The notes below the pieces were generated by a model. The model had not been told where the DNA came from. It saw only the letters and a list, made by a program, of their open reading frames with translations, and did no database searches. From positions 248,001 to 312,000 of IMG/VR virus record IMGVR_UViG_3300021137_000001: 64,000 nucleotides of DNA; one strand, written 5' to 3'. Positions 7,757-27,691 of the stretch are shown one piece after another. Numbering within the stretch: the stretch's first letter is position 1; each line of letters starts with the position of its first letter. A program made the translations under genes and the position numbers.

Positions 7757-7995
7757 GAATAATTGCTCATCAGTTTGGACTCGGTGATGTCGAAGACCCA
7801 GAAGTATATGCAGCACAGCCAATATATGAATGGGAGCAAACTGAACAAGGTCGTTGGCTACATGAACATAGTTACAAACAGATGGAATGGAAGATTGCAA
7901 TCAATTATGATACTTATGGTTACAAAGTAATAATATCAGCTTGGTTAGCAGAGAAAGACTTAACATACTATACGTTAAAGTGGAGTAGTAAATGA
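7753..7995 (+). CDS. hypothetical protein
   Basis: 80-aa ORF, coupled on both sides. Confidence 0.6.
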   Translation: MRIIAHQFGLGDVEDPEVYAAQPIYEWEQTEQGRWLHEHSYKQMEWKIAINYDTYGYKVIISAWLAEKDLTYYTLKWSSK

Positions 7996-8990
7996 TAGCA
8001 AAAGATAAATTAACAGTATTTGTTGGAGACATCGATGATGAGTTAGCAACATCTGCTAAATTACACGATTCAGCAGCATACTTGGTAGATTTTGCTAATT
8101 ATAACAAACAGCATACCGGTACTTGTTATACTAGTATAGCCGACTTGCCGGGACTTGTGGAATTTTCTGCTATATTAAGACAAGCATCTACTATAATATA
8201 TGTGCAACCAGAAAAATGGAATAATAATGAAACTAACAAATATTCATCGAAATATTGGACTGAATATTATTTAAATGTTTTTTCGTTAGATAAAACTAAA
8301 GAAGTAATTAATTTTTCCGAATCTATTAAATATCAACCAACAAATTTATCGATTATGCTAAATCTATTAGATAGCAGAAAAGATGAGCTATCTCAAATAT
8401 TATGGGTAGCTGGATGTTCTGTCACATACGGAGTTGGTGTAACTACAGAACAACGATACGGAAATTTACTAGCAAAACAATTAAATTTGCCGCTACGTAC
8501 ATTGGGGCGAGAATCATCATCAATTTCATATGCAGCTGATCAAATATTGCGGTCCGATATTAAGCAAGGGGACACAGTAGTATGGGGAATAACCAATCAA
8601 CTAAGAATAACATATTATGATCCAGCTAATCTAGAGTTAACACATATTACTACTAGTAACTATATTAAAGATCGTGCGCTCGATAAAATAATTAAATTAG
8701 ATTTCTTAGATAATCCTACCTTAATTTATTCAGCCGTAATAGCCATATACCAGGTAATTAATTTCTGTCAGAAAATTGGAGCAAAATTACTACTTGCTGG
8801 ATTATTAGTTGAACCCAAGTTAGCAGCATATTTTATAAATTTACCGGAATATATACATTTGTATAATTTTTACGGAGTAACATCATCTACATTATTCTTA
8901 GACACTGGGTCAGATAATATACATCCTGGTCCATTAACTCATCAATGGTATGCTGATAAAATATTAAACAAATTAAAGGAATTAGAATGA
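7992..8990 (+). CDS. SGNH/GDSL-like hydrolase or acyltransferase domain protein
   Basis: GCSVTYG (block I-like) and DNIHPG (DxxH block V). Confidence 0.6.
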   Translation: MIAKDKLTVFVGDIDDELATSAKLHDSAAYLVDFANYNKQHTGTCYTSIADLPGLVEFSAILRQASTIIYVQPEKWNNNETNKYSSKYWTEYYLNVFSLDKTKEVINFSESIKYQPTNLSIMLNLLDSRKDELSQILWVAGCSVTYGVGVTTEQRYGNLLAKQLNLPLRTLGRESSSISYAADQILRSDIKQGDTVVWGITNQLRITYYDPANLELTHITTSNYIKDRALDKIIKLDFLDNPTLIYSAVIAIYQVINFCQKIGAKLLLAGLLVEPKLAAYFINLPEYIHLYNFYGVTSSTLFLDTGSDNIHPGPLTHQWYADKILNKLKELE

Positions 8991-9970
8991 GAATATTAAT
9001 TACAGGTGGTGCAGGGTTTATTGGTCATAATGTAACTCGCATATTGGAAGAACAAGGACATACGTGCTTTGTTGTTGATAGCTTTACTAACTACGGATTC
9101 ATCCCACAACAAGAGATTAAATTTCTTAGTAAGGCGCGACTACAGCGTTTTAACTCGCAAGTTATAACTGCTGATATACGTGACACCACACGTATGTATA
9201 ATTTGTTTAAAGAATTACAACCAGATACTGTTATTCATCTTGCTAGTTTCCCTCGACAAAAAGTAGTAAGTGATGATCCGATTGCTGGGTCGGAAGTTAT
9301 GACTACTGGATTGATTAACTTACTGGAATGTTCAAAGCATAGTGGCGTTAAAAAGTTTGTGTACATTAGTAGCAGTATGGTCTACGGTGAATTTACTGAA
9401 GGATTGTTTGATGGCATTAACGAATATGTTGATTGCAAACCAATCGGACAGTATGGCATTATGAAGTATATGGGTGAGAAACTTGTAGCCGATTATACTC
9501 GTCGTGGTTGCTTTGCGCATACTATCATTCGCCCAAGTGCTGTATACGGACCTTGGGATGTCGAGGACAGAGTTGTTAGTAAGTTTATGCTTGCGGCAAT
9601 GCGTGATGAAGTATTAAAAGTTAAAGGTGCTAACGAAGTGCTAGACTTTACATACGTTGAAGATACTGCAATGGGCATTGCTCAAGCCGCTGTAAGTGAT
9701 AATGCAAACAATAAAATATACAATATCACACGTTCATCAGAAGCAGAATATACATTACTCGATGCCGCTAAACTTGCTATTAGTATTACAGGCAAAGGTA
9801 GCATCGATGTACAAGATAAAGACATTGCGTTTCCGTCGCGTGGTAGATTAAGTATTACAAGTGCAGTCATGGACTTTGGTTACAATCCTAAGGTCAATGT
9901 CGAGGATGGCTTTGCTCGTTATCATGAGTGGTTTAGTACAACTCCGTTTTGGATTAAAAAATTAAAATGA
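8987..9970 (+). CDS. NAD-dependent NDP-sugar epimerase/dehydratase
   Basis: TGGAGFIG, SSSMVYG, YGIMK (YxxxK), RPSAVYGP, DFTYVED. Confidence 0.93.
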   Translation: MRILITGGAGFIGHNVTRILEEQGHTCFVVDSFTNYGFIPQQEIKFLSKARLQRFNSQVITADIRDTTRMYNLFKELQPDTVIHLASFPRQKVVSDDPIAGSEVMTTGLINLLECSKHSGVKKFVYISSSMVYGEFTEGLFDGINEYVDCKPIGQYGIMKYMGEKLVADYTRRGCFAHTIIRPSAVYGPWDVEDRVVSKFMLAAMRDEVLKVKGANEVLDFTYVEDTAMGIAQAAVSDNANNKIYNITRSSEAEYTLLDAAKLAISITGKGSIDVQDKDIAFPSRGRLSITSAVMDFGYNPKVNVEDGFARYHEWFSTTPFWIKKLK

Positions 9971-11058
9971 TTCCGTTCTTTGGCATAGATAGACAATACA
10001 AAAATCTTCGCGAGGAGATACTTGATATTACTAATATTGTATATACGAGCGGGCAAGTTCTCGACGGCACATATACTAAAACGTTTGAGCAGACTATTGC
10101 TAAAATGACAGAGCGTAAGTATGCCATCGCTGTTAATAGTTGCACACAGGCGCTTATCTTTGCATTAAGAGCTATTGATCACTATTCATTATTTCGTAAA
10201 AACAAAGTACTAATCCCAGCGCAAAGTTTTGCCGCTACAGTCAATGTTGTTATTGAGGCGGGCTTTGAGCCTGTGTTCTGCGACGTTGATGCTGTTACTG
10301 GATTAATTAATCTCGATTCAATTCCAGTTGAGCCCGATGATATTGCGGCGGTTATGTACGTTAACTTGTTTGGTAATATTATCGACTACGATAAGTTACA
10401 GACTTATGTTACATTCTTTAATCAACATAAGATACCTGTAATCGAAGATGCTGCGCAATCGTTCGGTGCTTACTATCGTGGCGTTCCGAGTGGCAAGTTA
10501 GGTGACATTAGTTGTTTAAGTTTTGACCCAACAAAAAATCTTCCCAACTATGGAAGTGGCGGTATGATATTGTTAGATGACCCAGAGATTGCAATGTTAT
10601 GCTACAACTGGAGAGATAACGGAAAGATATCCGAACATAGTCTGTCTGGTACTAACAGCAAGATGAGTGAAGTTGATTGTGCGCAGATGTTAATTAAGTT
10701 AAAGTACTTTGATGAGTGGCAACAACGTCGTAAGAACATTGCAGAATACTATACAGAAGAATTAGATGGTCCGATTAAGTTAATCCCAATCGATAGTAAA
10801 GTAGAACATGCTTGGCATAAGTTTGTTATACACTATCCAGAGCGATCACGTCTATTCTCAGACTTGCAATCAATGAATATTGAAACTAAGATACATTATG
10901 TTGCACCATTACATCTAATGTCGCTAATTGGTGGGTATGAGGTATTGACTGGTGCTGAAGAATTTAGTAAGACTTGTTTAAGTTTGCCAATCTATCCTGA
11001 GATGACTGACGCAGAAGTTGAAGCAGTTGTTGATGCTATTAAAGAGTGTACTTGGTAG
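9967..11058 (+). CDS. DegT/DnrJ/EryC1/StrS PLP-dependent sugar aminotransferase
   Basis: AVNSCT, EDAAQSFG, SFDPTKNL (PLP lysine), GSGG, LSLPIYP. Confidence 0.93.
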   Translation: MIPFFGIDRQYKNLREEILDITNIVYTSGQVLDGTYTKTFEQTIAKMTERKYAIAVNSCTQALIFALRAIDHYSLFRKNKVLIPAQSFAATVNVVIEAGFEPVFCDVDAVTGLINLDSIPVEPDDIAAVMYVNLFGNIIDYDKLQTYVTFFNQHKIPVIEDAAQSFGAYYRGVPSGKLGDISCLSFDPTKNLPNYGSGGMILLDDPEIAMLCYNWRDNGKISEHSLSGTNSKMSEVDCAQMLIKLKYFDEWQQRRKNIAEYYTEELDGPIKLIPIDSKVEHAWHKFVIHYPERSRLFSDLQSMNIETKIHYVAPLHLMSLIGGYEVLTGAEEFSKTCLSLPIYPEMTDAEVEAVVDAIKECTW

Positions 11059-12367
11059 CGTAATACTGTTTTAGCCAATCCCATTCAAACGTAAGCATTA
11101 GTTTATCAGCATTACCATCAACTTCATCGTAAAATACAATTGCATCTTCTGCGCCTTTAATGCTCCATTCTGCATTTGCGCCCACTGCTTCATGTAACCA
11201 TTCATCGAGTCTGTAATCACTTTCGATATTACCAGTCTTACGCACATCATCACGTAGTTTAATACACTCTCTAAACGCAGTGCGCCATGTTAGTTCTGGT
11301 GTAGTGTTATAATGCGCTATAGCACTTACTACAGGTACTACAGCGTGTGCTTTGCTTAATGTAAAGTCAAGTCCACTGTCGTTTGTATCAAGTACTAATT
11401 GTTTGTTGTATGCAATCACACCCATGTGCCCATACTCTAATCCGTTTACTGGATTCTTACTGTGGAATATGTAATGCTTGGGCTCTTGTAAATAATCGGG
11501 TTGCCATTCCCAGTTAAAGTCAGGAACAACTTCTAACTTAGCAAACACCGCAAAGAACCACGGCGTTGTACTAAGTTCAGCAGCCGCTTTATATGCTTCG
11601 ACTCGCCCATTAACATTTTGTACACGTTTAATTCGAGTAAAGGTGCGAGCCGGATGAGTTTTGCCAAATATTGAAGTTACTAAGTGCCGATACCACTTTT
11701 CTGCGTCCGGTTCGCCGTTGCTGATATAGATAATATCAAGCAATTCTGGCTTCAAATAGTCTAATTTCTGCTTCGAAACGTGTGGATAATCGTAGATTTG
11801 AGTTACTAAATGCCCCATAATATCGCGGGGTGCTAACGATACGTTATTGCTTGCATTGAATGAGTAAAACACACGGTCTTTCCATAGTGGTGCGTCAAAT
11901 TTAGTACGTGCATTAACCCAAACGTATGGAGTATCGAAGTTATATGCTTTAAGTTCAGCAGTTATGTTCTCACTTGCACATTCTACCATGGCCCATGGTA
12001 GACGCATAACTCCATCTACATGCCAGTTAATATCCTTATACCATTCCAACATCTCAACATCTTTTTGTTTGTTAAATTCAGCAACGTTAACAAGAAATGT
12101 ATCACCAAACTCTTGTGTGCCGCTTGCCCAACAGTGTAGTTGATATGCTTCCCATGGTGCTGGCCGGTAATCAAAGTCAAAGTCATAGTAACTACAGCAA
12201 CTACTAATTACCCAAGCGTATTGTGTTCTACAACGTGTAATACAGCGTTTTAACGTGTCTAAATGATTGTTGTAGTAACGTACAACTTTTGCGTGAGGAT
12301 ATAGTGTACATAGGTTCTGCACGTTTTCATCGTGCCCGCCCATATCCATAATGAATACATCAAACAC
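11039..12367 (-). CDS. two-domain GT-A-like protein, paralog of 24498-25400 but lacking DxD
   Basis: RV.NVNG...AYKAAA, NPVNGLEYG, WRTAFRE shared with the 24498 ORF. Confidence 0.6.
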   Translation of the reverse strand: MFDVFIMDMGGHDENVQNLCTLYPHAKVVRYYNNHLDTLKRCITRCRTQYAWVISSCCSYYDFDFDYRPAPWEAYQLHCWASGTQEFGDTFLVNVAEFNKQKDVEMLEWYKDINWHVDGVMRLPWAMVECASENITAELKAYNFDTPYVWVNARTKFDAPLWKDRVFYSFNASNNVSLAPRDIMGHLVTQIYDYPHVSKQKLDYLKPELLDIIYISNGEPDAEKWYRHLVTSIFGKTHPARTFTRIKRVQNVNGRVEAYKAAAELSTTPWFFAVFAKLEVVPDFNWEWQPDYLQEPKHYIFHSKNPVNGLEYGHMGVIAYNKQLVLDTNDSGLDFTLSKAHAVVPVVSAIAHYNTTPELTWRTAFRECIKLRDDVRKTGNIESDYRLDEWLHEAVGANAEWSIKGAEDAIVFYDEVDGNADKLMLTFEWDWLKQYYATKYTL

Positions 12368-12860
12368 TAACTTTCTCTACTGTTAATCCGCACTCTACTA
12401 GAAACGCAAGCCCTATTGTATCGCGATATGATTCAGCATAGTACACTTCTGTAATGCCAGCTTGATAAATTGTTTTTGCACAAGTCAAGCAAGGGCAATG
12501 AGTAACAAAGATTGCGGCTCCTTTGCCGCCGCCATTTAGTTTTGCAAGTTTTGCCACTGCGTTCGACTCTGCGTGAAGCACAGTTGATTTTGTTTTCAAT
12601 CTGTATCTGAGTTGGTCTGCGGCAACAAATGGCCACTGTGACTCTATTTCATCTGAGTCAAGCCAACCACCAGCATCTTGTGCCATGTATTCCGGTTCTT
12701 CGCATACGTTATCCCATCCGCTGGGTTGACCGTTGTATCCAATAGAGATAATTGCATCATCTTTAACAATAATTGCGCCAACTTGTAAGCGTACAGCACT
12801 TGAACATTCAGCATAATTGTATGCTGTTTTCATGTGCGCCAATTTCATTTTATGTTTCAT
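12360..12860 (-). CDS. cd: dCMP deaminase
   Basis: VGAIIV, GYNG, HAESNA, PCLTC zinc motifs. Confidence 0.93.
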   Translation of the reverse strand: MKHKMKLAHMKTAYNYAECSSAVRLQVGAIIVKDDAIISIGYNGQPSGWDNVCEEPEYMAQDAGGWLDSDEIESQWPFVAADQLRYRLKTKSTVLHAESNAVAKLAKLNGGGKGAAIFVTHCPCLTCAKTIYQAGITEVYYAESYRDTIGLAFLVECGLTVEKVSV

Positions 12861-13263
12861 TTATATCCTTAGCAATCATATCTGCCCAACGTTCAGCATC
12901 TTGTTCTGTTACACGTATATCGTATGACTCTGGTGGTTCAAATAGTCGGTTTGTATCTTCAAATCGCCCTTCATTAATTGTGTCAACCCATATAACATAG
13001 TCGGCATCAAATATATCACGTATCTCTTGAGTAGGTGCAACAAAGTCGCATATACTATGTTGCCACCCATCGAACGCATCCATTGCTGCAAGTTGACTCA
13101 TTCTACTTGCTTGTCGCAGTCTACCTTCTATGCTAAAGTCCATATCGTTAAATTGTTTTCTTATCTCATCTGCATTGTGCCAAGTTGCATTTAATCTTTT
13201 TTGCAATGCTTCTGCTAGTGTTGTTTTACCTGCACCCGGCAAGCCCATTATTAGTATGTTCAT
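12850..13263 (-). CDS. adenylylsulfate-kinase-like P-loop kinase (short)
   Basis: GLPGAGKTT; NADEIR..F...DFS.EGR.RQ resembles CysC; 137 aa. Confidence 0.7.
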   Translation of the reverse strand: MNILIMGLPGAGKTTLAEALQKRLNATWHNADEIRKQFNDMDFSIEGRLRQASRMSQLAAMDAFDGWQHSICDFVAPTQEIRDIFDADYVIWVDTINEGRFEDTNRLFEPPESYDIRVTEQDAERWADMIAKDINET

Positions 13264-14756
13264 GATAACACTTTAACTCCGTATAGTTCTTCAAATCGAT
13301 CTGCATCAGCACGATCATTTACCATTGGTTCACCACGTACATTTAAACTTGTATTAAGCAACATCGGGCAACCTGTCCAAGTGTACCATAAGCATAATAG
13401 TTCACGTATGCCACTACCATCTCGCGGCACTGTCTGTACACGACTTGTACCATCAACATGTATTATAGCAGGAAATTCATTGGGACGCAAGCACTTTGCA
13501 GTTGTTTGCATATACGGGCTAGATTTAAATCCGTTAGGCATTTCAAAATACTCATCAGCAAACTCCTCCAGTATTATAGGAGCGAATGGGCGAAACTGTT
13601 GTCTACGTTTAATTAAGTTTACAGCATCTTTAATGTCAGTGCCACGTGGGTCAGCTAATAAACTTCTATTACCTAATGCTCTAGGACCAAACTCTGCACG
13701 TCCACTAGCAACACCAACAATCTTATTTGCCATTAACTCGGATACAACATCGGTGCAAGGATAAGGGCCAGGAATATCATGCCCAAGAAAAGCATTAGTC
13801 CAATTAAGTTTCCCACCATGCGCTAATGCTGCCGCTCCAAGGCTGCTACCAGCATCACCAGGATTAGGCATAATCCAAATGTTATCAAAGTATTCTCCTA
13901 AATCTCTATTAGCACTACAGTTAAGCGCAACACCGCCAGAGTATACTAAATTACTGTTAGGTGCGAGCATACTTGCTTTATACATTATATTATGTATTAG
14001 TTCTTCAGTAAGTGTTTGTGCTGCATTAGCAATCTCAAAGTCATTCCATTTAACTTTCATATCATTAGCGGGCAGCCCAATATGTAGATTGTGTTTTAAT
14101 GTTAGATTAAACTCATTGTTAACTAGCCAATGAGAAAGTTGATCGCTTAATCGGTGTGTTTTTTTCTTTGCCCAGCCAGCCATGCCCATTAATATGTATT
14201 CTTCATCCAGTGGACGTAAACCAACTTCTTTAGTAAATGCACTATACATCAAGCCGATACTATGCGGATATTTTTGTCCCCATACCTTATTATATTGTGC
14301 CCGACCGTTTTTGTAATATGCACTCCATATGCTTATTGTATCCCATTCACCAATTGCATCAATTACAACCACAGTTGCATCATCAAATGTACTTGTTTGA
14401 AAGCCTGCAGCCGCATGTGATAGATGATGATTGTATGTACTAATTGGGAGATGATATATCGGAGAGTTGGGTACCATCTTTTTAAGCATACCACGTACAG
14501 TCCACGGCGTTTTTAATTCACTGTATTGTCCAGCATAAAGCTGACGTGTCTTCTTAACCCACGGTCTTTCATAGTATGCAATTTGATCGGGCGAGCCGTA
14601 TGTTAATGCATCTGCTATTAGCGCACTGTTTAAGTTTGCGTCATGTTTAATCAGGCTATAGCGTTCAGCATGACCTGCAAAGACAATATCATCGCCTTTG
14701 ATTAATGTTACTGCTGCGTCATGAAACCCAGCACTAATTCCTAATATGTTGTGCAT
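13260..14756 (-). CDS. carbamoyltransferase (NodU/CmcH family)
   Basis: GFHDAA, ERYS, HHLSHA, DAIGE, GGVALN, PGDAG, EFGPRALGNRS, FRPFAP, LLNTSLN. Confidence 0.95.
   Translation of the reverse strand: MHNILGISAGFHDAAVTLIKGDDIVFAGHAERYSLIKHDANLNSALIADALTYGSPDQIAYYERPWVKKTRQLYAGQYSELKTPWTVRGMLKKMVPNSPIYHLPISTYNHHLSHAAAGFQTSTFDDATVVVIDAIGEWDTISIWSAYYKNGRAQYNKVWGQKYPHSIGLMYSAFTKEVGLRPLDEEYILMGMAGWAKKKTHRLSDQLSHWLVNNEFNLTLKHNLHIGLPANDMKVKWNDFEIANAAQTLTEELIHNIMYKASMLAPNSNLVYSGGVALNCSANRDLGEYFDNIWIMPNPGDAGSSLGAAALAHGGKLNWTNAFLGHDIPGPYPCTDVVSELMANKIVGVASGRAEFGPRALGNRSLLADPRGTDIKDAVNLIKRRQQFRPFAPIILEEFADEYFEMPNGFKSSPYMQTTAKCLRPNEFPAIIHVDGTSRVQTVPRDGSGIRELLCLWYTWTGCPMLLNTSLNVRGEPMVNDRADADRFEELYGVKVLS
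14740..14750. repeat. 11-bp direct repeat CCTAATATGTT, copy 1 (core of a ~30-bp degenerate duplication)
   Basis: Identical to 15564-15574; the two copies flank the HNH gene. Confidence 0.8.
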
Positions 14757-14785
14757 TTTGATAAATAAATTTAAAGGTGATTAAC

Positions 14786-15568
14786 ATGATATTTATTGAA
14801 AACAAATATACTAAAATTTATTATAGCATAATTGATTCTGCAAAGTCAAGAACTTTATCGCAGGAAACATACACAGAAAAACATCACACAATTCCCAAAT
14901 CACTTGGGGGCGACAATTCAACAGAAAACTTAGCGTCCTTGACTGCAAGAGAGCATTTTATATGCCATTGGTTGCTAACTAAAATGACTTCGGGCACATC
15001 AAAGCGTTCAATGGTTTTTGCACTAAGAATGTTAAAGGCTATGTCCACTAAGCACCAAAGATATGAAAGTTGTGTTACTGCCAAAGTGTATGAATCTATT
15101 AGAAAAGAGCACTCTGTATACCTTAGTAATATGCTTAAAGGGAGAATTGTTAGCGACGAAACTAGACACAAAATGTCTATTGCGGCAAAGAAAAAGACGC
15201 AAAATTCTTTTAAAGGGCATTCTCACAGTGAAGAAACAAAGGCTGCAATTGGGGATGCTAATAGGGGCAAACAAAGAACTGCCGAACAAAAAGAAAAAAT
15301 GTCGGCAGCACTTAGAGACATGTCAGTGAATCGTAGAGAAAAATTATCAGTTTATAAAAAGAATCATCCATTAACTGAGGATTCACTGAACAAAATTCGT
15401 AAATTATATGTCGTTACATTTCCAAACTGTACTACTGAGCAGACTAATAATTTAGCAGAATTTTGTAAAAACCACAAACTAAGTTTACCAGCAATGCGTG
15501 ATCAGGTTGCTAAAGGTAAACAAGAACATCACAATGGATACTGTGTTAAATCCATCCCAAAGACCTAA
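14786..15568 (+). CDS. HNH homing endonuclease (Mob-like) with NUMOD3-like repeats, antisense to the operon
   Basis: EKHHTIPKSLGG.N...NL..LTAREHFICH; repeats SDETRHKMS, HSEETKAAIG; TAAATA at 14762 and SD AAGGTG upstream. Confidence 0.88.
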   Translation: MIFIENKYTKIYYSIIDSAKSRTLSQETYTEKHHTIPKSLGGDNSTENLASLTAREHFICHWLLTKMTSGTSKRSMVFALRMLKAMSTKHQRYESCVTAKVYESIRKEHSVYLSNMLKGRIVSDETRHKMSIAAKKKTQNSFKGHSHSEETKAAIGDANRGKQRTAEQKEKMSAALRDMSVNRREKLSVYKKNHPLTEDSLNKIRKLYVVTFPNCTTEQTNNLAEFCKNHKLSLPAMRDQVAKGKQEHHNGYCVKSIPKT

Positions 15569-16955: not shown

Positions 16956-16960
16956 AAAAT

Positions 16961-20502: not shown

Positions 20503-21802
20503 ATGATTTTAAATCTATAAACTCAGGGAATACCTGTCGGAATCTTTCGTTACGATAAATGTCCATTTGTTCGTTTACTCGAAAAAATTCACTCAATAAT
20601 TCACTCTTATCATCGGCATCCATAAAGTGCAATAAACTCTGATATCCATTGGTGGCACGTTTTAAATAATCAGAAGGTGCTAACCATTGTATATGTTCTT
20701 CTATTTTTTCCCTAGCCCGATCTTTATATACCTTAGGCAATACATCAATACGGTCGCGTTCGGATCCTTGTAGAATATTAATGTTCCAATCTTGTGGTTT
20801 AATAAATCCACGCTCAACCCAATCTCTATGGAAATCTGTGATGTGTAATATATTATAGATACTAACAGTAGGACTTATATAAAAGTCTACATTAGGACAT
20901 TTTTCAATCATGCGGCGGCGATTATTTTCAATGTCTGCCCACTTAGTACCTTTGCGTATATATTCGCCTCGTTCACCCATACCATCTAAACTAGCACCTA
21001 CACTAACACTATCAAATAACTGCCAATAATCTAATACATCTTCATTTTTAAGATTAAGTCTGCTAAAGTTTGTGTTGTATACTAATTTAACATCAAAGCG
21101 TTCTTGACGCACTAACTCTTTTAATACTTTATAATGTTCTTCCATGATAAGCGGTTCGCCACCGGCAAAGTAAATCTGATCAAGATACGGAATGTGTTGT
21201 AGCATTTGCACCCACATGTCGTTTTCTGTACGACCTGCAAACATAATTTGTGGGTGATTACGTGGACCAAACAGTTTAGTTTCTTCTGTGTACCAACTAC
21301 TGCTAAACAAACTTCCACACGTTCTGCAACTAAAGTTACATAGATTACTAAAGCGTACATCATAGTAACGTAGTTTAAAGTCCTCTACTGTGCCGTTTGC
21401 TAGTGTGTTATCAACTAATGCAATGTGTTGCCCAAAGTTTTTATTTGAACTGTTGCGCATACTCATAAAGCCACTTGCTTCTTGCTCGTAGCACTTAGTA
21501 CATTCTTTACACGATTTTTCTGTAAGCATGTTTGTACGCATAGTTTTATATGCATCATCATTCCATACTTCTTCCATTGTGTTTTGTTTGAAGTTACCAA
21601 TTGGGTAATCCATTTCGCCGAGACAACAAGGATATGCTCGTCCGTCTGGGAAGCCATGCATGTGTATCCACGGGATTATGCAAAATGTATCACTATCAAC
21701 TAATCTCGCAAGTTGATCTTTACGTAAATCATCTTCGCTTATATAAACTGGCTTACGTGTATGATAGTTATGATTCTTATAATATTCTGTTTCTTTTGTC
21801 AA
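20489..21802 (-). CDS. radical SAM protein with N-terminal SPASM/twitch-like Cys cluster (rSAM-3)
   Basis: CNFSCRTC, AGGEP; CIIPW.H...PCC ... CTKCY. Confidence 0.9.
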   Translation of the reverse strand: MTKETEYYKNHNYHTRKPVYISEDDLRKDQLARLVDSDTFCIIPWIHMHGFPDGRAYPCCLGEMDYPIGNFKQNTMEEVWNDDAYKTMRTNMLTEKSCKECTKCYEQEASGFMSMRNSSNKNFGQHIALVDNTLANGTVEDFKLRYYDVRFSNLCNFSCRTCGSLFSSSWYTEETKLFGPRNHPQIMFAGRTENDMWVQMLQHIPYLDQIYFAGGEPLIMEEHYKVLKELVRQERFDVKLVYNTNFSRLNLKNEDVLDYWQLFDSVSVGASLDGMGERGEYIRKGTKWADIENNRRRMIEKCPNVDFYISPTVSIYNILHITDFHRDWVERGFIKPQDWNINILQGSERDRIDVLPKVYKDRAREKIEEHIQWLAPSDYLKRATNGYQSLLHFMDADDKSELLSEFFRVNEQMDIYRNERFRQVFPEFIDLKSYVVK

Positions 21803-23133
21803 AGTGTGTTATACCAGTTAGTTAATTGTGTAAACGTGTATTTAAAGTCTTTACCTCGGCGTTGGTCGTATTGCTGATAAAAATTCTTAAAGTCTTGTAA
21901 TAAGTTGTTGTCAACTGTTGTATCTTGTTGTAAGTAATCAATCAAACGTTTAATATGTTCAAGTTCATGCTCGTGTAATGCACTATTCTTACTATTGTTA
22001 ACTAAAAATTCACTAAGCTCTTTACTATATATTGCACGTAGCTCAGCTGGTAGTATCATCGGACTTTGAAAACTAGGGAAGCGCAGTATGTTTAATGTAA
22101 ATGACAATGCTTCGCGGCCATACTTCTCTTTAAGCTTCATCATGTTGTATAAAAATTCACTAAGGCTCGGCAAGCATAATGCGTTGATAGTACACATGAC
22201 ATGTATGCTACGCACTTTTTTACTGTTAAGTAAGAATATTAAATTGCCAACCCATTGTTTCCATTCTAGTCCATCACGTATATACTCTGCATGTGTGCCC
22301 ATTGACTCATTGCTAGTGTAGATATCAAGTTCAATACCCTGTGTGCTATCGAGCAAGCGTTCAAGTATATCACGCTTAAAGCCAAGATTACTATTAATAG
22401 CAAGACGTGTAGTACTCGCGCCTTTGTGTGCTTTAAACCAATCGATTAAGCGCCACGTGTTATCTGACATTAGTGGTTCGCCGCCTGTAATGCGTAGCTC
22501 TTTTAATGTTTTATGTAGGTCTGTTTCCCACCATTTGAAGAATGCTTCCACATACGGATTAACTTCATTGAGTTTAAATAATTGACTGCTACTATGCTCG
22601 TGAGTAAAATGATTTCTGCCGTCTGAAACCAAATTGGTGTATGCCCCGTTCTGATGTATGTCTCTAACCCAACTAGTGCTAAAAGCAGGGTTGCAGTAAG
22701 AACAAGCAAACTGGCAAGTTCTGTCAAAGGCAATTTCCAAAGTTTGTAAGTTAACATCTTCGTTTGCAGGTAAATTGTATGCATCATCTAAGTCCTTATC
22801 GTTATAAATTACAGTCTTATATACACGGTCACTAACTGCATCTGTGCTCATGTCTTCTATCTTCCAGCAGTAATCACAGCCCGCAGGTCGTTCTCCTGCT
22901 TGCATTTGTCTACGCTGTTCTTTCTTTTGCGGAGTATTATGTATTGCGCTTGGATTTGTTTTAATTGCTTCTATATCAATTGCATGAGGCAATGGGTGAT
23001 GACAACTTGTAGTTTGTCCACTTCCTAACCATATAGTAGCGTTGTACCATTTTGCCGCGCAGAAGCTAGCGGACTTAATGTCAATCACTCTACGCTTATA
23101 TGCTAAATCTGTTTCGTTATTAATTTTCGGCAT
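21799..23133 (-). CDS. radical SAM protein with N-terminal Cys/His cluster (rSAM-2)
   Basis: CQFACSYC, TGGEP; CAAKW...SCHHP ... CDYCW. Confidence 0.9.
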   Translation of the reverse strand: MPKINNETDLAYKRRVIDIKSASFCAAKWYNATIWLGSGQTTSCHHPLPHAIDIEAIKTNPSAIHNTPQKKEQRRQMQAGERPAGCDYCWKIEDMSTDAVSDRVYKTVIYNDKDLDDAYNLPANEDVNLQTLEIAFDRTCQFACSYCNPAFSTSWVRDIHQNGAYTNLVSDGRNHFTHEHSSSQLFKLNEVNPYVEAFFKWWETDLHKTLKELRITGGEPLMSDNTWRLIDWFKAHKGASTTRLAINSNLGFKRDILERLLDSTQGIELDIYTSNESMGTHAEYIRDGLEWKQWVGNLIFLLNSKKVRSIHVMCTINALCLPSLSEFLYNMMKLKEKYGREALSFTLNILRFPSFQSPMILPAELRAIYSKELSEFLVNNSKNSALHEHELEHIKRLIDYLQQDTTVDNNLLQDFKNFYQQYDQRRGKDFKYTFTQLTNWYNTL

Positions 23134-24505
23134 GGTATTTACACTCCTGCCAAAAATCTTTCATTTGTGGGAATGTGTTCAAAAAGTTTAATCCTCTACG
23201 TTTATCGTATTCATTAAAAAATCTATAGAAGTCTGCACGTTGCGTTTTTAAATAGGTCGCATCTAAGTCAGCTCCTTGTTTCATCCAATCAAGATTACGT
23301 TCCATACGTTGTATCTCATAGTCTTTAAAGCCCTCAAAGTTATCAGCACGTTCGTCTGCTTGGTTTGTTCGCATAAATGTAACAACATCTTCTAATATGC
23401 GAACATAACTTGCTGGCAGTATTTGTAAACTTTGATATGTTGGGCTACGTAACAGTGGCGTGTCAAACCATACACGTTGATACGTTGAGCTAAACTTTTT
23501 ACGCATATTTAGAATTGATTCTAACAAGCGTTGCAGGCCAAGTATGTTTAAATTGTTCATTGTAATAATAAATGTTAAACTATTGCGATATGGAATATCC
23601 GTTAGGTATCGTTGAACATACGACCCACATCTATTCCAGTCTAATCCATCCCGTATATATTCAGCATGATCGGCAATGCCCGTATCTAAACTAACATACT
23701 GCATAAAGTGTTCAATGCGCTCGCCTTCGCATAGTTGTTTAACTTTATCTAGATACTTATTAAACAACGCGGGTTCAACACTAAAGTTACTTGTAACATC
23801 AACGTGCAAATCACTTTTCGGCAAAGCAAGTATGTAATCAAACACACGATGCGTATTCTTATCCATAAGCGGTTCGCCACCAGTCATTCTAAAGTGTTTT
23901 AGTTTAGGATATAGCTCAGGCCACCAGGCCCAGAATGCATCAACATAGGGGTTAGCTTCACGTACTGGGATTGGCTTACGTCGACCTTGAAAGTGCTCAG
24001 GTGCATTGTGCGGAGTACTTGTTGGGTATGCACCCCAACGATCAATATCTTTGCCCCACTCTGTTGAATACTGTGGACTGCAATATGAACAAGCTAAGTT
24101 ACAGCCATGACTGAAGTTTACTTCAACATAACTTGGCACAACATCTTGGTCCCATGGTGCATTTACTATCGCTTCATAGTGTTCAGCCGCCCATGGTTCA
24201 CCAGAACGATAGTGTCTGTCGCTTAGTTGCTTGTTATCTTCTGCACTCCAACAGTAACTACATTCTGCTGGGCGTGTTTGCTCTAGCATAAGTTTACGTT
24301 GCTGTTTCTTGTAGTCAGTATTGTGTAGCGCACCTGGATTGAATAACAATGGCGCACTATCAATCTCGTGCAACGGAGGGTGATAACAACTGTTAGTCAT
24401 GCCAGTTGTTAAATGCAAACTTACTTGTTGCCACTTAGCCAAGCAGAGTGCAGGTCCTAACTTGTCCTTCATTTCTTCTGCAGCTGACATAAAATTGCTA
24501 CTCAC
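23120..24505 (-). CDS. radical SAM protein with N-terminal Cys/His cluster (rSAM-1)
   Basis: CNLACSYC, TGGEP; CLAKW...SCYHP ... CSYCW. Confidence 0.9.
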   Translation of the reverse strand: MSSNFMSAAEEMKDKLGPALCLAKWQQVSLHLTTGMTNSCYHPPLHEIDSAPLLFNPGALHNTDYKKQQRKLMLEQTRPAECSYCWSAEDNKQLSDRHYRSGEPWAAEHYEAIVNAPWDQDVVPSYVEVNFSHGCNLACSYCSPQYSTEWGKDIDRWGAYPTSTPHNAPEHFQGRRKPIPVREANPYVDAFWAWWPELYPKLKHFRMTGGEPLMDKNTHRVFDYILALPKSDLHVDVTSNFSVEPALFNKYLDKVKQLCEGERIEHFMQYVSLDTGIADHAEYIRDGLDWNRCGSYVQRYLTDIPYRNSLTFIITMNNLNILGLQRLLESILNMRKKFSSTYQRVWFDTPLLRSPTYQSLQILPASYVRILEDVVTFMRTNQADERADNFEGFKDYEIQRMERNLDWMKQGADLDATYLKTQRADFYRFFNEYDKRRGLNFLNTFPQMKDFWQECKYHAEN

Positions 24506-25400
24506 GTGTCATTATGCCTGTGTTCTTAAATACGCTTTTGTAATGATGCTTAAAGAATCTGCTTTGGTCTGCATTTAATTGTGGTGCAGGTAGACCCAAT
24601 CGTAAATTTAACGAAAGCGACATTTCCCCGCATTCCTCGACTAAGTTGTACACTTTATGTTGATGCCATATTCTGTTTAGTGCATCAAAGTCTTGCACTT
24701 CTCTATAATCCCAATCTGTAATCATTGTCATGTATGTACCAAGTTTAGCACCATACATTGCCCAGTCGCCATTCTCTACATCCATACCTACATTGTGCCA
24801 TATGCTTAAATGATCATAGTTGCGATTGTGTACCCGTTTCTCAAACTCTTGCAGGCTTGGCTTAGTACCTCGAGCTAAACACATTTTAACACCTTCCCTA
24901 AAGCCTGCTCGCCACGCTTGATACGGAGTTGCGTTTGGATATGTTGTGCTGTAACAATCGTTCATACTCCAATAGCGTGGATCAAAACAAAACTCAACAG
25001 CGGTATCATCGTCACCGTTACTTGCTTCGTGAGTACGCATATTGTTGACAAAGTCTTTAGTCCAACAACTCATGCCGCCATTGCCGTACATTAGTCCGTT
25101 TATTTCGTTACGTGCTTTCCAGCGAAATACCACGTCACTGTTTGTGTTATCAAGTTGTAATTGTAAATTGAAAAATGCAGGATCGGGTATATTATCGCCA
25201 TCGATAAGAATGAATCTATCTGTATCCGATATCGCTGCGGCGGCTTTGTGCGCAGCGTCACTACCTTTGACTCCATCTACACGTTTGGCCCACGGTACCA
25301 TATTTTGTATCTTAATCCAATTTTGCTCTTTGTTTGGCTCATCGTATGTTAGCATCACACAATCTAAATCTGCAATATCAATTAGTGGCATAGTATTCAA
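24498..25400 (-). CDS. GT-A-like glycosyltransferase
   Basis: FILIDGDN (DxD), RVDGVKG..AAHKAAA, NGLMYG, WRAGFRE. Confidence 0.7.
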   Translation of the reverse strand: MNTMPLIDIADLDCVMLTYDEPNKEQNWIKIQNMVPWAKRVDGVKGSDAAHKAAAAISDTDRFILIDGDNIPDPAFFNLQLQLDNTNSDVVFRWKARNEINGLMYGNGGMSCWTKDFVNNMRTHEASNGDDDTAVEFCFDPRYWSMNDCYSTTYPNATPYQAWRAGFREGVKMCLARGTKPSLQEFEKRVHNRNYDHLSIWHNVGMDVENGDWAMYGAKLGTYMTMITDWDYREVQDFDALNRIWHQHKVYNLVEECGEMSLSLNLRLGLPAPQLNADQSRFFKHHYKSVFKNTGIMTRE

Positions 25401-25728
25401 TCTCGTTATAAGTATCAGTTGGTTCTAATATTAATCCTGCGTGTTTCTTTACTACAGCATAACCCTCAGAGCTACTGATTAATTGTACATGATAACCGGG
25501 ATTGTTGTCAATCTTTTTTAGTTTACCATCTTTAATTGTGTAGCAGAAGTAGTTGTCATATTCATCTTTGCTAACAACAATATACGTTGTATCGGATGGG
25601 TGATTTATCATTGTACACATCGTAATATGCCCATCTTCATAGTGTATTCTGTATTCTTTGACTTCTTCCACAGTGGGTTGCAACATTGCAAATGCTTCAG
25701 CTAATGTATCATTTGAGTTCATCTTCAT
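25378..25728 (-). CDS. hypothetical protein
   Basis: 116-aa ORF overlapping both neighbours. Confidence 0.6.
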   Translation of the reverse strand: MKMNSNDTLAEAFAMLQPTVEEVKEYRIHYEDGHITMCTMINHPSDTTYIVVSKDEYDNYFCYTIKDGKLKKIDNNPGYHVQLISSSEGYAVVKKHAGLILEPTDTYNEIEYYATN

Positions 25729-26563
25729 ATTCCTTAACTAAAGCATCTGTTATCCAACTCTTTTCATGATAGTGAATGGGATGATATTGATTTGTATTTG
25801 CTATACGTATCATCGGTAAATCTGTTTCGCACATTACTAATTCGGGCCATGGCGTACTTGTCCACTTGTTAATAGCAGGTTTCATATGTACAAAGTTAAT
25901 AAAATCTGCGCTGGGCAATGTACAATTTTCTATGCCCAAGATCTTTGCCGCTAGTGCATACACTACATCAGTAGTCGGATTATTATCGCGACAGTTAAGT
26001 AATACCTTATCGCGAATGTGCGCCCAGTTTCTAAATAGTTGTTCTGCTAGTGTAAAAAATTGGGTTGCTTCGCGTGTGTATCTAAAATACATTAGTCCAT
26101 TGTAGGTGTCGGGCAATTCATTATCGTCAAACAACTTTCTGTATTCACGTGATCGACTTAACTCTTGTTTATAATCTCTATAGCCAGTGCTTAATACAAT
26201 GTTCTTTAATCTAAAAGCGGTCCACCAGTGTGCAATACTTCTAGTGAATACAATATCACTTTCAAGTTTAATTGTTTCTTTGAATGGTGTGAGATAAAAT
26301 GCTTGCCATTCGTTACTTAACTTCCAAGCTTCGTCTACGGCTAAGTCATTCTCAATTGTAATTACATAATCAAACACTCGACGATGCTGTTCGGTTACTC
26401 GCGCTAGTGTATTCTTATCAACTGCAACTGCGTATAAGCTATTGGGCATTGTAAGTTTAATGCTCATTGCCTGCACGTAAGCAAGACGCAAATAATCGAC
26501 ATCTGCGGTGTTTTGCGCAATTGTCATAAAGCCTTGCTGTGCTTGATGGGGTGTTATTCGCAT
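25709..26563 (-). CDS. GT-like protein (DxD changed to ESD)
   Basis: FYLTPFKETIKLESD; paralogous to 26554-27315. Confidence 0.6.
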   Translation of the reverse strand: MRITPHQAQQGFMTIAQNTADVDYLRLAYVQAMSIKLTMPNSLYAVAVDKNTLARVTEQHRRVFDYVITIENDLAVDEAWKLSNEWQAFYLTPFKETIKLESDIVFTRSIAHWWTAFRLKNIVLSTGYRDYKQELSRSREYRKLFDDNELPDTYNGLMYFRYTREATQFFTLAEQLFRNWAHIRDKVLLNCRDNNPTTDVVYALAAKILGIENCTLPSADFINFVHMKPAINKWTSTPWPELVMCETDLPMIRIANTNQYHPIHYHEKSWITDALVKEYEDELK

Positions 26564-27315
26564 AAGGTATCTACCAATTTATCAAAGTCGGCACTTAATA
26601 AGTAATCTTTATCCATTATGTGTACGTTTTGCAGGGCAATGACATGTGCTATATTTTCTTCACGTATAATCATCTTTTCACCTGTTATTTCGATGTTTTT
26701 GACTAGTTTATCTATGGTTAGCATAGTAAAAGGGATACTTTGTGATAGGTCAGTAGTGTAACCACTAATAATATTGTTAGCAATTGCAAATGCGTAATCA
26801 TTGCGAAAGTTGCGTTCTCTAATGTGATACAACTTTTGATAATAAGCATAGTTACGTTCAATTCTGCCTACTAAGTCAAACAATGCTTTCGTTTTATCAG
26901 TGCGCTTAAATGTTATAGCAGTTGCCCACACATAATCTAAACTCATTTGCCCCATGTTGCCCGACATTGACATTGTAGGACTTTGATTGTGATGCATTAA
27001 CTTGTAATCAATTGTAGTGTCAAGTATGTTTAATAAACTCGTATCAAATTGTAAATAATCGCTATCAAGTAATATAGTTTCATCATACGGACTAAGTTCA
27101 TACGCACGATATCTACCACCGTTCTTCCATTGTGTTCCACCTGCGTGACCTGTTCTAAAGTTTTTAGCAGATGTAACGCCAGTATCTGTTATAATAGTAG
27201 TTGGTAGATTTAATGTGTGCTCAATCAGTCGTGCGGCTTGCTCAGCGATTTTAATGTAATCAACTGTATCTGTGTTAACAGCAAATAATATTACGCCCTT
27301 AGACTTTTCTTGCAC
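26554..27315 (-). CDS. GT-A-like glycosyltransferase
   Basis: YELSPYDETILLDSDY (DxD), RNDYAFAIA. Confidence 0.65.
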   Translation of the reverse strand: MQEKSKGVILFAVNTDTVDYIKIAEQAARLIEHTLNLPTTIITDTGVTSAKNFRTGHAGGTQWKNGGRYRAYELSPYDETILLDSDYLQFDTSLLNILDTTIDYKLMHHNQSPTMSMSGNMGQMSLDYVWATAITFKRTDKTKALFDLVGRIERNYAYYQKLYHIRERNFRNDYAFAIANNIISGYTTDLSQSIPFTMLTIDKLVKNIEITGEKMIIREENIAHVIALQNVHIMDKDYLLSADFDKLVDTLCE

Positions 27316-27616
27316 GTTTAAGTTCTTCGTGTTGTATATGCCACAAGTTCATTGCCTGCTGATAGTGTTGTGTGCATATATCTAAAAATTCCGATCGTTG
27401 CACAAAGATTGGGTTCTCGTACGTATCTTCTAAGTATAGCGCAACACTGGGCCATGTTGAGAGAAACGCAATAAGCTCTGGTGTTACCTTAAAGAGCCCA
27501 TTGTTATATGGTACGTGCAGATCTGTTTGCACTTTCTCTTTAAGTATACGTTTGTTTGTTTGATAATCCGTTGCTTGTTTAATTTGAGCAACTAGTTGAT
27601 TGATTTCTGTTGTCAT
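27299..27616 (-). CDS. hypothetical protein
   Basis: 105-aa ORF; first gene below the 70-bp cassette. Confidence 0.65.
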   Translation of the reverse strand: MTTEINQLVAQIKQATDYQTNKRILKEKVQTDLHVPYNNGLFKVTPELIAFLSTWPSVALYLEDTYENPIFVQRSEFLDICTQHYQQAMNLWHIQHEELKRARKV

Positions 27617-27662: not shown

Positions 27663-27691
27663 AGTGTACTACATTTATACGAGTATGTCAA
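27663..27691 (-). promoter_or_regulatory. sigma70-type promoter in repeat copy 1
   Basis: Minus strand TTGACA, 17-bp spacer, TACACT. Confidence 0.7.

Follow-up and report, generated by a model that had tools for sequence, protein, structure and literature searches.

Several described systems bear on the glycan modification of viruses. In virus-encoded virion glycosylation, as found for the capsid and tail of mycobacteriophages and for the fibril glycan clusters of chloroviruses and mimivirus, GT-A-type transferases and NDP-sugar tailoring enzymes (an SDR and a DegT-type aminotransferase) are encoded next to structural genes whose products are Ser/Thr-rich. None of these systems is known to include radical-SAM (rSAM) enzymes, a carbamoyltransferase, SGNH proteins, or an APS-kinase-like kinase. 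In the host recognition cluster of pelagimyophages and cyanomyophages, tail fiber genes are interleaved with GT8-type glycosyltransferases (GTs) and variable rSAM gene cassettes of uncharacterized function (PMC7029224); these are T4-like phages with a hypervariable cluster. In addition, a phage NodU-type enzyme makes 5-carbamoyloxymethylcytosine and co-occurs with thymidylate synthase (TS) homologs and dCMP deaminase (PMC8670742). In the biosynthesis of 2-deoxystreptamine, the twitch-domain rSAM dehydrogenase BtrN makes a keto group that a DegT-family aminotransferase (BtrS/R) then aminates.

We analyzed a jumbo phage window of 64,000 nucleotides (positions 248,001 to 312,000 of IMG/VR record IMGVR_UViG_3300021137_000001, from a 329-kb genome). 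An initial annotation, made from the sequence alone, had described at positions 7992 to 27616 a large modification cluster attached to tail fiber genes, with four GT-like genes, five rSAM enzymes, three SGNH-like proteins, a NodU/CmcH carbamoyltransferase, an APS-kinase-like enzyme, an NDP-sugar epimerase, and a DegT aminotransferase. We confirmed this observation: the region contains a roughly 20-gene operon of sugar-transferring and sugar-tailoring enzymes directly after the fiber genes. The coordinates match ORF boundaries exactly, since 7992 is the start of a 332-aa ORF and 27616 is the start, on the minus strand, of a 105-aa ORF, and 11 of the 12 junctions from 27616 down to 15546 overlap or are 5 nucleotides apart. 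The initial annotation had missed a dCMP deaminase, an HNH homing endonuclease, and three conserved unknowns of 363, 116, and 105 aa.

The genes upstream of the operon (27695 to 29727, minus strand) encode two paralogous Thr/Ser/Ala/Gly-rich fiber-like proteins of 317 and 318 aa, which are the candidate acceptors. Their S+T content is 24 to 26%, their A+G content is 25%, and charged residues amount to only 4 to 6%; searches against Pfam and PHROG gave no hit. One such gene lies directly upstream of the 105-aa ORF in 42/42 related loci. The 105-aa conserved unknown (27299 to 27616, minus strand) is the first gene of the operon; it is present in 42/42 loci and has no family hit. The following genes, all on the minus strand, include three GT-like proteins. 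(i) The 253-aa GT8-like GT-A protein (26554 to 27315) has a DSD motif, is a paralog of the 284-aa protein (25% identity, 6e-08), with aligned invariant D103, H264, and K268, and was found in 42/42 loci. (ii) The AF2 model of the 284-aa protein (25709 to 26563) has a pLDDT of 89.6, and a Foldseek search against the PDB matched glycogenin (4e-09), LgtC (TM 0.55), UGGT, LH3, and LARGE1, indicating a GT8-like GT-A fold; its 1812 homologs are all unnamed. (iii) The 300-aa protein (24498 to 25400), with a D67xD69 and a YGNGG motif, has a divergent predicted GT-A fold (pLDDT 92.7). Its PDB matches were weak (TM 0.25 to 0.35) and of the GT2 type (ArnC, SunS, WrtF, RmlT, and TarP; E about 1e-3), with nucleotidyltransferases at similar scores. 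In contrast, its named matches in the viral library are nearly all glycosyltransferases, including weak matches to mycobacteriophage Che8 and giant-virus GTs, and relatives are fused to GT-B domains. A fourth GT-like protein, of 442 aa (11039 to 12367), was found in 156 IMG/VR loci; its residues 210 to 375 are a paralog of the 300-aa protein (BLASTP, 1e-13; profile hit, 3e-26) but carry F275-A276-K277 in place of DxD, conserved in at least 55, 60, and 61 of 61 orthologs, respectively. None of the four proteins hits a Pfam GT model. Between the 284-aa and 300-aa genes lies the 116-aa unknown (25378 to 25728), which is present in 39/42 loci and has no family hit.

The center of the operon (18027 to 24505, minus strand) is occupied by five paralogous rSAM enzymes with an N-terminal twitch domain, namely, rSAM1 (18027 to 19316), rSAM2 (19303 to 20502), rSAM3 (20489 to 21802), rSAM4 (21799 to 23133), and rSAM5 (23120 to 24505). 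All of them score 285 to 406 bits against NCBIfam NF033640, whose cut-off is 170, and contain an invariant CX3CX2C motif plus four N-terminal Cys. The N-terminal domain matches the twitch domain of BtrN (7e-06), and each of the five types has its own ortholog in a Bacteriovoracaceae array. rSAM1 is followed by the 363-aa unknown (16961 to 18052, minus strand), found in 60/78 loci, with invariant H125, E129, H161, and E164; it has no Pfam or PDB hit, but weak homologs were found beside bacterial N_Twi_rSAM genes. Next are two SGNH/DUF6071 proteins on the minus strand, of 232 aa (16257 to 16955) and 212 aa (15546 to 16184), with GDS motifs read from the sequence. Only the latter has a Pfam hit (DUF6071, 3.7e-07), but a profile built from its orthologs also finds the former (1.6e-31) and residues 137 to 331 of the 332-aa protein (7992 to 8990, plus strand; 2.2e-09).

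The operon is then interrupted by an HNH/NUMOD3 homing endonuclease (14777 to 15568, plus strand; NUMOD3, 8.9e-08; HNH, 5e-04), an insertion that is not part of the pathway. HNH-like genes appear in only 4/78 relatives, and not at this junction in the gene orders listed; in the relatives inspected, the SGNH and carbamoyltransferase genes overlap by 35 nucleotides. Without this insertion, the run is one overlapping operon that starts after a Thr/Ser-rich fiber gene. It continues on the minus strand with (i) a 498-aa NodU/CmcH-type O-carbamoyltransferase (13260 to 14756; Pfam C-domain, 5.9e-48, and N-domain, 7.9e-36; 66/78 loci), for which NovN, GdmN, and TobZ were the best PDB matches; (ii) a 137-aa APS-kinase-like P-loop kinase (12850 to 13263; Pfam APS_kinase, 3.3e-08; PDB 2yvu, 5.7e-04; 60/78 loci), where the Pfam match covers only profile positions 5 to 90 of 152, the N-terminal 60%; (iii) a dCMP deaminase (12360 to 12860; Pfam, 1.7e-20), which is embedded in the operon but probably belongs to nucleotide metabolism and is present at this position in 29/78 relatives; and (iv) the 442-aa protein. 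Convergent to these genes is a plus-strand unit of a DegT/DnrJ/EryC1 aminotransferase (9967 to 11058; Pfam, 5.8e-84; 69/78 loci), an NAD-dependent SDR of the NDP-sugar epimerase/dehydratase family (8987 to 9970; Pfam, 1.8e-42; 72/78 loci), and the 332-aa protein, an accessory gene present in only 5/78 relatives. The best PDB match of the aminotransferase is the Gln--scyllo-inositol transaminase 7b0d (8e-60), followed by QdtB, WbpE, and NtdA; its closest solved relatives are keto-inositol or 3-keto-sugar aminotransferases. The PDB matches of the SDR are RmlB-, GalE-, Pal-, and UXS-like, and YGIMK and SSSMVYGE motifs were read from its sequence.

Scattered genes in relatives, or a missing GT fold, had been named in advance as observations that would speak against a glycan pathway. 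We found instead that the genes are tightly linked in every relative examined. The order fiber, Thr/Ser-rich protein, 105 aa, 253 aa, 284 aa, (116 aa), 300 aa, and rSAM5 is fixed in 42/42 related IMG/VR loci, and the order rSAM, 363 aa, SGNH, carbamoyltransferase, kinase, and 442 aa, converging on DegT and the epimerase, is fixed across 78/78 loci down to 43% identity, although the number of rSAM and SGNH cassettes varies between relatives. The core order is fixed over hundreds of contigs, whereas the pelagimyophage cluster is hypervariable; a marine virus fragment gave only 28% identity. However, synteny within one phage lineage is inherited and does not by itself show shared function. Two lines of evidence do not depend on this lineage. 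(i) The cultured Ralstonia jumbo phage RsoM2USA has a reduced module of homologs of the 105-aa (35% identical), 253-aa, 284-aa, 300-aa, and rSAM proteins plus an epimerase, located among genes whose products were found in virions by mass spectrometry. (ii) Bacterial loci combine the same rSAM family with sugar-modifying and sulfation genes. A Crocinitomicaceae locus (OZ252050) has three N_Twi_rSAM genes with NodU carbamoyltransferase, epimerase, a UbiA-GT4-GDSL fusion, GDSL-like, sulfotransferase-like, CysN, CysD, and APS kinase genes, and a Saprospiraceae locus (JAWKLN010000015) has GT2, DegT, epimerase, UbiA, and three rSAM genes. Profile searches found the same SGNH family near bacterial N_Twi_rSAM genes in about 12 loci, epimerase in about 6, carbamoyltransferase in 3, and DegT in 3. 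These Bacteroidota loci of glycan or glycolipid type are also uncharacterized; they have UbiA prenyltransferase, GT2/GT4, PhyH, WelO5-like, ABC transporter, and CysDN genes and lack the GT8-like and 300-aa families of the phage.

Taken together, these data are best explained by one ancestral late operon (27616 down to 11039, now split by the homing endonuclease) and a convergent three-gene unit (7992 to 11058) that encode a soluble, cytoplasmic pathway that assembles and tailors a glycan, perhaps on the fiber proteins, a reading in which we have moderate confidence. Family membership, folds, operon structure, conservation, and the association of these families in bacteria are shown by the analyses above, whereas every reaction, the order of steps, and the acceptor are inferred. 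In this view, the SDR and the aminotransferase would convert a host NDP-hexose into an NDP-amino sugar, and the GT8-like pair and the divergent GT-A protein(s) would transfer sugars to an acceptor. The five anciently diverged rSAM enzymes would each carry out a different radical C-H activation on the sugars, by analogy with BtrN an oxidation to a keto group, or an epimerization or deoxygenation, which may feed the aminotransferase. The SGNH proteins would add or remove O-acyl groups, the NodU-type enzyme would O-carbamoylate a hydroxyl, and the small kinase would phosphorylate the product or supply PAPS. The most likely acceptor would be the Thr/Ser-rich distal fiber protein encoded immediately upstream, modified before virion assembly. 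The parallel with BtrN is a resemblance of logic only, since the twitch domain is N-terminal here and C-terminal in BtrN, the similarity in the rSAM core is generic, and no inosose synthase is present. Several data weigh against the model: no glycan, glycoprotein, or enzymatic activity has been observed, the evidence for GT activity is limited as described above, and no nucleotidyltransferase, acetyltransferase, or clear sulfotransferase was found in the region. In addition, most characterized twitch/SPASM rSAM enzymes act on peptides, Elusimicrobia copies of the family are fused to TPR repeats, and a Bacteriovoracaceae array of eight has no sugar genes beside it. The block also abuts TS, DHFR, and dCMP deaminase genes.

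The interpretation given in the initial annotation, a phage-encoded pathway building a heavily decorated glycan on the virion or host surface with DNA hypermodification as the alternative, is partly supported. The enzyme families, their linkage, the GT-A folds, the bacterial loci, and the RsoM2USA module together favor a carbohydrate pathway over DNA hypermodification, but a virion or host surface acceptor, the chemistry of the five rSAM enzymes, and a heavily decorated product are not demonstrated by these data. Its statement that no characterized phage pathway has this enzyme set appears correct, although rSAM cassettes and GT8 genes beside tail fibers have been noted, uncharacterized, in pelagimyophages (PMC7029224). 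Compared with the described virus-encoded glycosylation systems, which are not known to include rSAM enzymes, a carbamoyltransferase, SGNH proteins, or an APS-kinase-like kinase, the GT families here have no Pfam model, and no glycan has been demonstrated.

Among the alternatives, all of which we consider unlikely, the synthesis of a soluble aminoglycoside- or aminocyclitol-like or other glycosylated metabolite that acts on the host or on competitors, not of a polymer-bound glycan, ranks marginally first. The enzyme logic resembles that of aminoglycoside clusters, as seen in the solved relatives of DegT and the carbamoyltransferase, the BtrN-like twitch domain, and the presence of a small kinase and GTs, and all proteins are soluble. 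However, no cyclase, scaffold-forming enzyme, exporter, or self-resistance gene is recognizable in the operon, and its position after the fiber genes is fixed in every relative. Almost equally doubtful is a remodeling of the host O-antigen, capsule, or a glycolipid during infection, for example, to block superinfection, as proposed by the authors of PMC7029224 for the GT8 genes in the GT-rich host recognition clusters of pelagimyophages. The bacterial homologs of the rSAM, carbamoyltransferase, and SGNH set do lie in envelope-polysaccharide or glycolipid-type loci with UbiA, GT4, and ABC genes. Nevertheless, no protein of the cluster has a membrane helix, and no polyprenyl-phosphate transferase, flippase, polymerase, or ligase is present in it, which argues against the host surface as a target; furthermore, the operon directly follows structural genes, and the GT-like families of the phage are absent from the bacterial loci.

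DNA hypermodification, in which the carbamoyltransferase, kinase, GT-like proteins, PLP enzyme, and rSAM enzymes would decorate a hydroxymethyl-pyrimidine or another base, is also unlikely. The system of PMC8670742 also has a carbamoyltransferase near a TS-family gene and a dCMP deaminase; here, the carbamoyltransferase shares an operon with a dCMP deaminase and lies about 6 kb from TS and DHFR, and thymidine hypermodification pathways use P-loop kinases, PLP enzymes, and rSAM enzymes. However, the TS homolog is a canonical thymidylate synthase, with about 300 bits to bacterial ThyA, Cys-His, the Asn of PFNIASY, and the C-terminal APMAI all kept, and is paired with DHFR, so that nothing within the 64 kb visible of the 329-kb genome indicates hydroxymethyl-pyrimidine DNA. 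In addition, the deaminase is absent at this position in 49/78 relatives, RsoM2USA and the bacterial loci hold the module without nucleotide-metabolism genes, the carbamoyltransferase is embedded in a GT/rSAM/SGNH operon, and PMC8670742 itself reports carbamoyltransferases next to GTs on unmodified contigs. A direct, RiPP-like radical modification of the fiber polypeptides (epimerization, cross-links, or C-methylation-type chemistry), with or without glycosylation, is similarly improbable: although most characterized SPASM/twitch rSAM enzymes are peptide maturases (seen here as secondary NCBIfam hits), Elusimicrobia copies are fused to TPR repeats, and a Bacteriovoracaceae array of eight paralogs has no sugar genes beside it, the Thr/Ser-rich proteins have 0 to 1 Cys, which excludes thioether chemistry, the rSAM family repeatedly co-occurs with sugar-modifying enzymes in Bacteroidota, and no leader-peptide-like or RiPP recognition element was seen.

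Two further observations concern the junction of fiber genes and operon. Across 43 loci, the divergence of the Thr/Ser-rich protein tracks that of the 253-aa GT (rho 0.50) and of rSAM5 (0.55), the latter being compatible also with direct modification by the rSAM array, but not that of the fiber gene on its other side (0.17); this is a weak hint, confounded by linkage and shared ancestry. Between the fiber gene and the operon (27637 to 27691, minus strand), we found promoter-like hexamers plus an A/T-rich hairpin and a T run, of which an identical copy lies at 28713 to 28767, where no exact pair would be expected by chance.

The window is part of a jumbo myovirus and corresponds to positions 248,001-312,000 of the IMG/VR contig IMGVR_UViG_3300021137_000001 (329,321 bp). 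Its baseplate wedge protein is about 35% identical to those of Atu_ph07, SCTP-2, and the GAP32/Rak2-like phages. A DNA-level search of INPHARED retrieved no relative among deposited phage genomes, and of 50,697 phage records only Ralstonia phage RsoM2USA and, distantly, Vibrio phages K566 and K567 hold related genes. No tRNA or Rfam match was found in the window. On the minus strand, baseplate genes are followed by a single 4196-aa ORF (33393-45983), which lies between the baseplate wedge and the fiber genes and is comparable to a giant ORF of RsoM2USA (ORF361) that was reported as a virion protein. There follow two fiber genes, one with a C-terminal Peptidase_G2-type chaperone domain, two paralogous Thr/Ser/Ala/Gly-rich (T/S-rich) proteins of 317 and 318 aa, and, from 27616 downwards, a run of genes whose reading frames overlap or nearly touch. 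This run encodes, in order, a 105-aa unknown, paralogous 253-aa and 284-aa proteins, a 116-aa unknown, a 300-aa protein, five radical-SAM (rSAM) enzymes, a 363-aa unknown, two SGNH/DUF6071 proteins, an HNH/NUMOD3 endonuclease on the other strand (14777-15568), a NodU/CmcH carbamoyltransferase, a 137-aa APS-kinase-like P-loop kinase, a dCMP deaminase, and a 442-aa protein (11039-12367). Converging on this run from the plus strand are a 332-aa protein with an SGNH-like C-terminal half, an NDP-sugar SDR, and a DegT aminotransferase, upstream of which lie DHFR and a canonical ThyA-type thymidylate synthase (5914-7297). The latter order is conserved in 60-64 of 78 relatives, so the block sits at the boundary between the structural and nucleotide-metabolism modules. 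The inventory of the initial annotation is therefore correct, although it omitted the deaminase, the endonuclease, and the three conserved unknowns.

The five rSAM enzymes all belong to NCBIfam NF033640 (N_Twi_rSAM, twitch domain-containing radical SAM protein), with full-length scores of 285.5, 337.6, 406.5, 299.0, and 294.1 bits against a curated cut-off of 170 bits. The CX3CX2C cluster motif (C155, C159, and C162) and four N-terminal cysteines (C41, C59, C101, and C104), a set corresponding to one auxiliary cluster, are invariant in nine paralogs. The N-terminal domain matches the twitch domain of BtrN (7e-06), whereas the core matches generic rSAM structures. The paralogs are only 19-29% identical to each other, but each has 60-80% identical orthologs in related phages, and they are therefore old, separately conserved enzymes rather than recent copies. 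In a maximum-likelihood tree, each of the five types pairs, with strong support, with one member of an array of eight such genes in a Bacteriovoracaceae chromosome (UBA6144, DIVA01000093.1, 6055-18051). This array lies next to rplU, rpmA, and obg and has unknown ORFs of 110, 320, and 84 aa interspersed. The set of five thus exists as an ensemble in cells as well, although the tree does not resolve the direction of transfer. Four distant rSAM paralogs are also clustered in Vibrio phage K566 (8711-15447), an unrelated 255-kb phage in which the neighboring genes are annotated only as hypothetical; in the tree they sit on long branches outside the five phage types.

None of the four GT-like proteins hits a GT sequence model. 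Pfam, PHROG, and NCBIfam searches returned nothing for the 442-, 363-, 300-, 284-, 253-, 116-, and 105-aa ORFs, and none of 120 homologs of the 284-aa protein carries a Pfam domain. The predicted structure of the 284-aa protein (pLDDT 89.6) has a GT-A fold that is closest to GT8 enzymes, namely, glycogenin (E 4e-09, probability 1.0), LgtC (TM 0.55), UGGT, LH3, and LARGE1. As putative counterparts, judged from sequence alone, of the metal-binding GT8 DxD motif, the 253-aa protein has DSD and the 284-aa protein has ESD; in an alignment from which two rows were left out, D103 and H264, the latter a putative downstream His ligand, were invariant across both paralog groups. The 300-aa protein, in which D67 and D69 are nearly invariant, is also modeled with high confidence, but its fold matches to GT2 enzymes are weak (E about 1e-3, TM 0.25-0.35), and nucleotidyltransferases score similarly. 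Its named matches in the viral structure library are nearly all glycosyltransferases, whereas a sequence search of PDB gave only noise. This family has 1215 representatives at 50% clustering, and relatives give faint PF00535 hits, some being fused behind GT-B domains. Residues 210-375 of the 442-aa protein are a paralog of the 300-aa protein, but F275-A276-K277 occupies the DxD position (F275 conserved in 55, A276 in 60, and K277 in 61 of 61 orthologs), so that it is not a canonical metal-dependent transferase. The 442-aa family is nevertheless conserved in 156 IMG/VR loci; in more distant relatives, the protein is 570-600 aa long, and the N-terminal 200 residues match nothing.

The remaining enzymes were assigned with differing degrees of support. 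The carbamoyltransferase contains both the Kae1-like N domain (PF02543, 7.9e-36) and the YrdC-like C domain (PF16861, 5.9e-48) and aligns over its full length with NovN (1.7e-46), including the HHLSHA motif. The DegT/DnrJ/EryC1/StrS aminotransferase scores 282.8 bits over profile positions 4-359 of 360 and contains the SFDPTK motif that corresponds to the PLP-binding Lys. The APS-kinase-like protein scores 34.2 bits against a cut-off of 21.1, but only profile positions 5-90 of 152 are matched (PDB 2yvu, 5.7e-04). Of the SGNH-like proteins, those of 212 and 232 aa have the block I GDS motif, whereas the 332-aa protein has GCS; a block V DxxH motif can be read in the 232-aa (DDAH) and 332-aa (DNIH) proteins but not clearly in the 212-aa protein. 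Pfam GDSL hits were below the cut-off, whereas DUF6071 was above it. A profile of the 363-aa family found nothing in PDB or Pfam.

Linkage in relatives and the presence of a GT fold had been named beforehand as points on which a pathway assignment would depend. All 42 IMG/VR loci with full flanks keep the order fiber > T/S-rich > 105 > 253 > 284 > (116) > 300 > rSAM5 > rSAM4... on one strand. Seventy-eight loci centered on the 442-aa gene keep rSAMs > 363 > SGNH > carbamoyltransferase > kinase > 442, converging on DegT and the epimerase, followed by thymidylate synthase and DHFR, and this holds down to 43% identity. In the relatives inspected, which lack the HNH gene at this junction, the SGNH and carbamoyltransferase genes overlap, and the ancestral unit is therefore one operon of about 20 genes. 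What varies is the number of rSAM and SGNH cassettes, the 332-aa gene (5/78), and the dCMP deaminase (29/78). These loci all belong to one phage lineage, so fixed order alone does not prove shared function. Contigs binned as Legionellales, Polynucleobacter, Porticoccaceae, Flavobacterium, Rickettsiales, and Haliscomenobacter MAGs (loci L092-L098) carry the phage-type gene order at 50-70% identity; they are probably misbinned phage contigs and are thus unreliable as host evidence.

Independent evidence was obtained from two sources. (i) The only cultured phage with the 300-aa and 284-aa families is RsoM2USA, which has homologs of the 105-, 253-, 284-, and 300-aa proteins, one rSAM, and a second 300-like gene in a row, with an epimerase three genes upstream. 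These genes sit among ORFs whose products were identified in virions by mass spectrometry, although the published description of that phage does not mention the module. (ii) NF033640 genes occur in Bacteroidota loci that look like glycan or glycolipid clusters. One locus has three rSAMs with a NodU carbamoyltransferase, an epimerase, a UbiA-GT4-GDSL fusion, GDSL-like and sulfotransferase-like proteins, CysN, CysD, and APS kinase, and another has GT2, DegT, epimerase, UbiA, and three rSAMs. Profiles built from the phage proteins find the same SGNH family near bacterial rSAMs in about a dozen loci, and epimerase, carbamoyltransferase, DegT, and the 363-aa family in a few, but never the GT-like families of the phage. 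Other bacterial contexts, including those in Agaribacillus and Halobacteriovoraceae, were uninformative or ambiguous, and one exact-product look-up found no record. The Elusimicrobia context points elsewhere: in MAG MJ-2014_bin-0981 (L108, L117, and about 15 further contigs), dozens of N_Twi_rSAM copies occur in tandem, many of them fused to TPR repeats in ORFs of 560-1130 aa, which represents an unexplained expansion of the family in one genome.

The recurring association of this rSAM family with sugar-nucleotide and sugar-tailoring enzymes favors a carbohydrate pathway, as do the predicted GT-A folds. The closest solved relatives of DegT aminate keto-inositols or 3-keto sugars, and those of the carbamoyltransferase carbamoylate sugar hydroxyls of small molecules. 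A BtrN-like role for at least some of the rSAMs, making keto groups or otherwise activating sugar C-H bonds, is a reasonable proposal that rests on analogy. The T/S-rich fiber protein is the obvious candidate acceptor because of its invariant position. As a weak hint, its divergence tracks that of the neighboring GT and rSAM5 but not that of the fiber gene on its other side, an analysis that is confounded by linkage and shared ancestry. Family assignments, modeled folds, and gene order are results of the analysis, whereas the individual reactions, the existence of a glycan on a virion protein, and the identity of the acceptor are inferred. The proposal of the initial annotation, a glycan pathway acting on the virion or the host surface, is only partly supported. 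The dCMP deaminase was rejected as a pathway member because of its variable presence, and the HNH gene was rejected as a mobile insertion.

An action on the host envelope fits less well than a soluble acceptor, since no cluster protein has a predicted membrane helix and no initiating transferase, flippase, or polymerase is present. DNA modification was also considered, because a phage NodU-type enzyme carbamoylates 5hmC and co-occurs with thymidylate synthase homologs and dCMP deaminase (PMC8670742). The resemblance is superficial: the only thymidylate synthase homolog in the window, which covers a fifth of the 329-kb genome so that a hydroxymethylase elsewhere cannot be excluded, keeps the dUMP-specifying Asn (PFNIASY) rather than the Asp of a dCMP hydroxymethylase, together with Cys-His and the thymidylate synthase C terminus, scores about 300 bits to ThyA, and sits with DHFR; the deaminase is often absent at this position; and the module travels without nucleotide genes in RsoM2USA and in bacteria.

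Virus-encoded glycosylation of virion proteins occurs in mycobacteriophages and giant viruses, and GT8 genes and rSAM cassettes beside tail fibers have been noted, uncharacterized, in pelagimyophages. What is new here is (i) the enzyme set, with five or six twitch-domain rSAMs, a carbamoyltransferase, SGNH proteins, a kinase, and two GT-A families without sequence models; (ii) its fixed operon structure in a very abundant clade of uncultured phages; and (iii) its kinship with a bacterial rSAM ensemble. More than 595 IMG/VR stretches encode the 300-aa protein, and more than 7,500 proteins relate to one rSAM. A bolder reading, which we consider unlikely but not excluded, is that this abundant clade of environmental jumbo phages decorates its distal tail fibers with a glycan whose sugars are rebuilt by five or six dedicated twitch-domain rSAM enzymes and then aminated, acylated, carbamoylated, and phosphorylated or sulfated. 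In this view, the five-paralog toolkit is shared en bloc with predatory Bdellovibrionota, and the pathway would represent the first function for the NF033640 family and a new kind of radical carbohydrate tailoring. If the fibers carry such a glycan, it would bear on host recognition, on evasion of host or grazer recognition, and on virion stability in a very common group of uncultured jumbo phages. It would also assign chemistry to a widespread, uncharacterized rSAM family and show that phages can carry multistep radical tailoring pathways, not only simple glycosyltransferases. The minimal version in RsoM2USA, a cultured phage, makes the question accessible to testing.

Three HNH/NUMOD3 homing-endonuclease-like genes lie on the plus strand of the 64-kb window, at 7-1290, 4253-4900, and 14777-15568, the last of which sits inside the operon between the SGNH and carbamoyltransferase genes. 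On the minus strand, an identical element of about 70 nt (TTGACA-17-TACACT, then a 9-bp A/T-rich hairpin and a T run) follows both T/S-rich genes, at 27637-27691 and 28713-28767. Only these two copies exist in the window, and promoter and terminator scans were no better than shuffles. Most relatives have a single T/S-rich gene, so this looks like a recent tandem duplication of the gene plus its downstream spacer, and the hairpin may be a weak terminator between the fiber gene and the enzyme operon.
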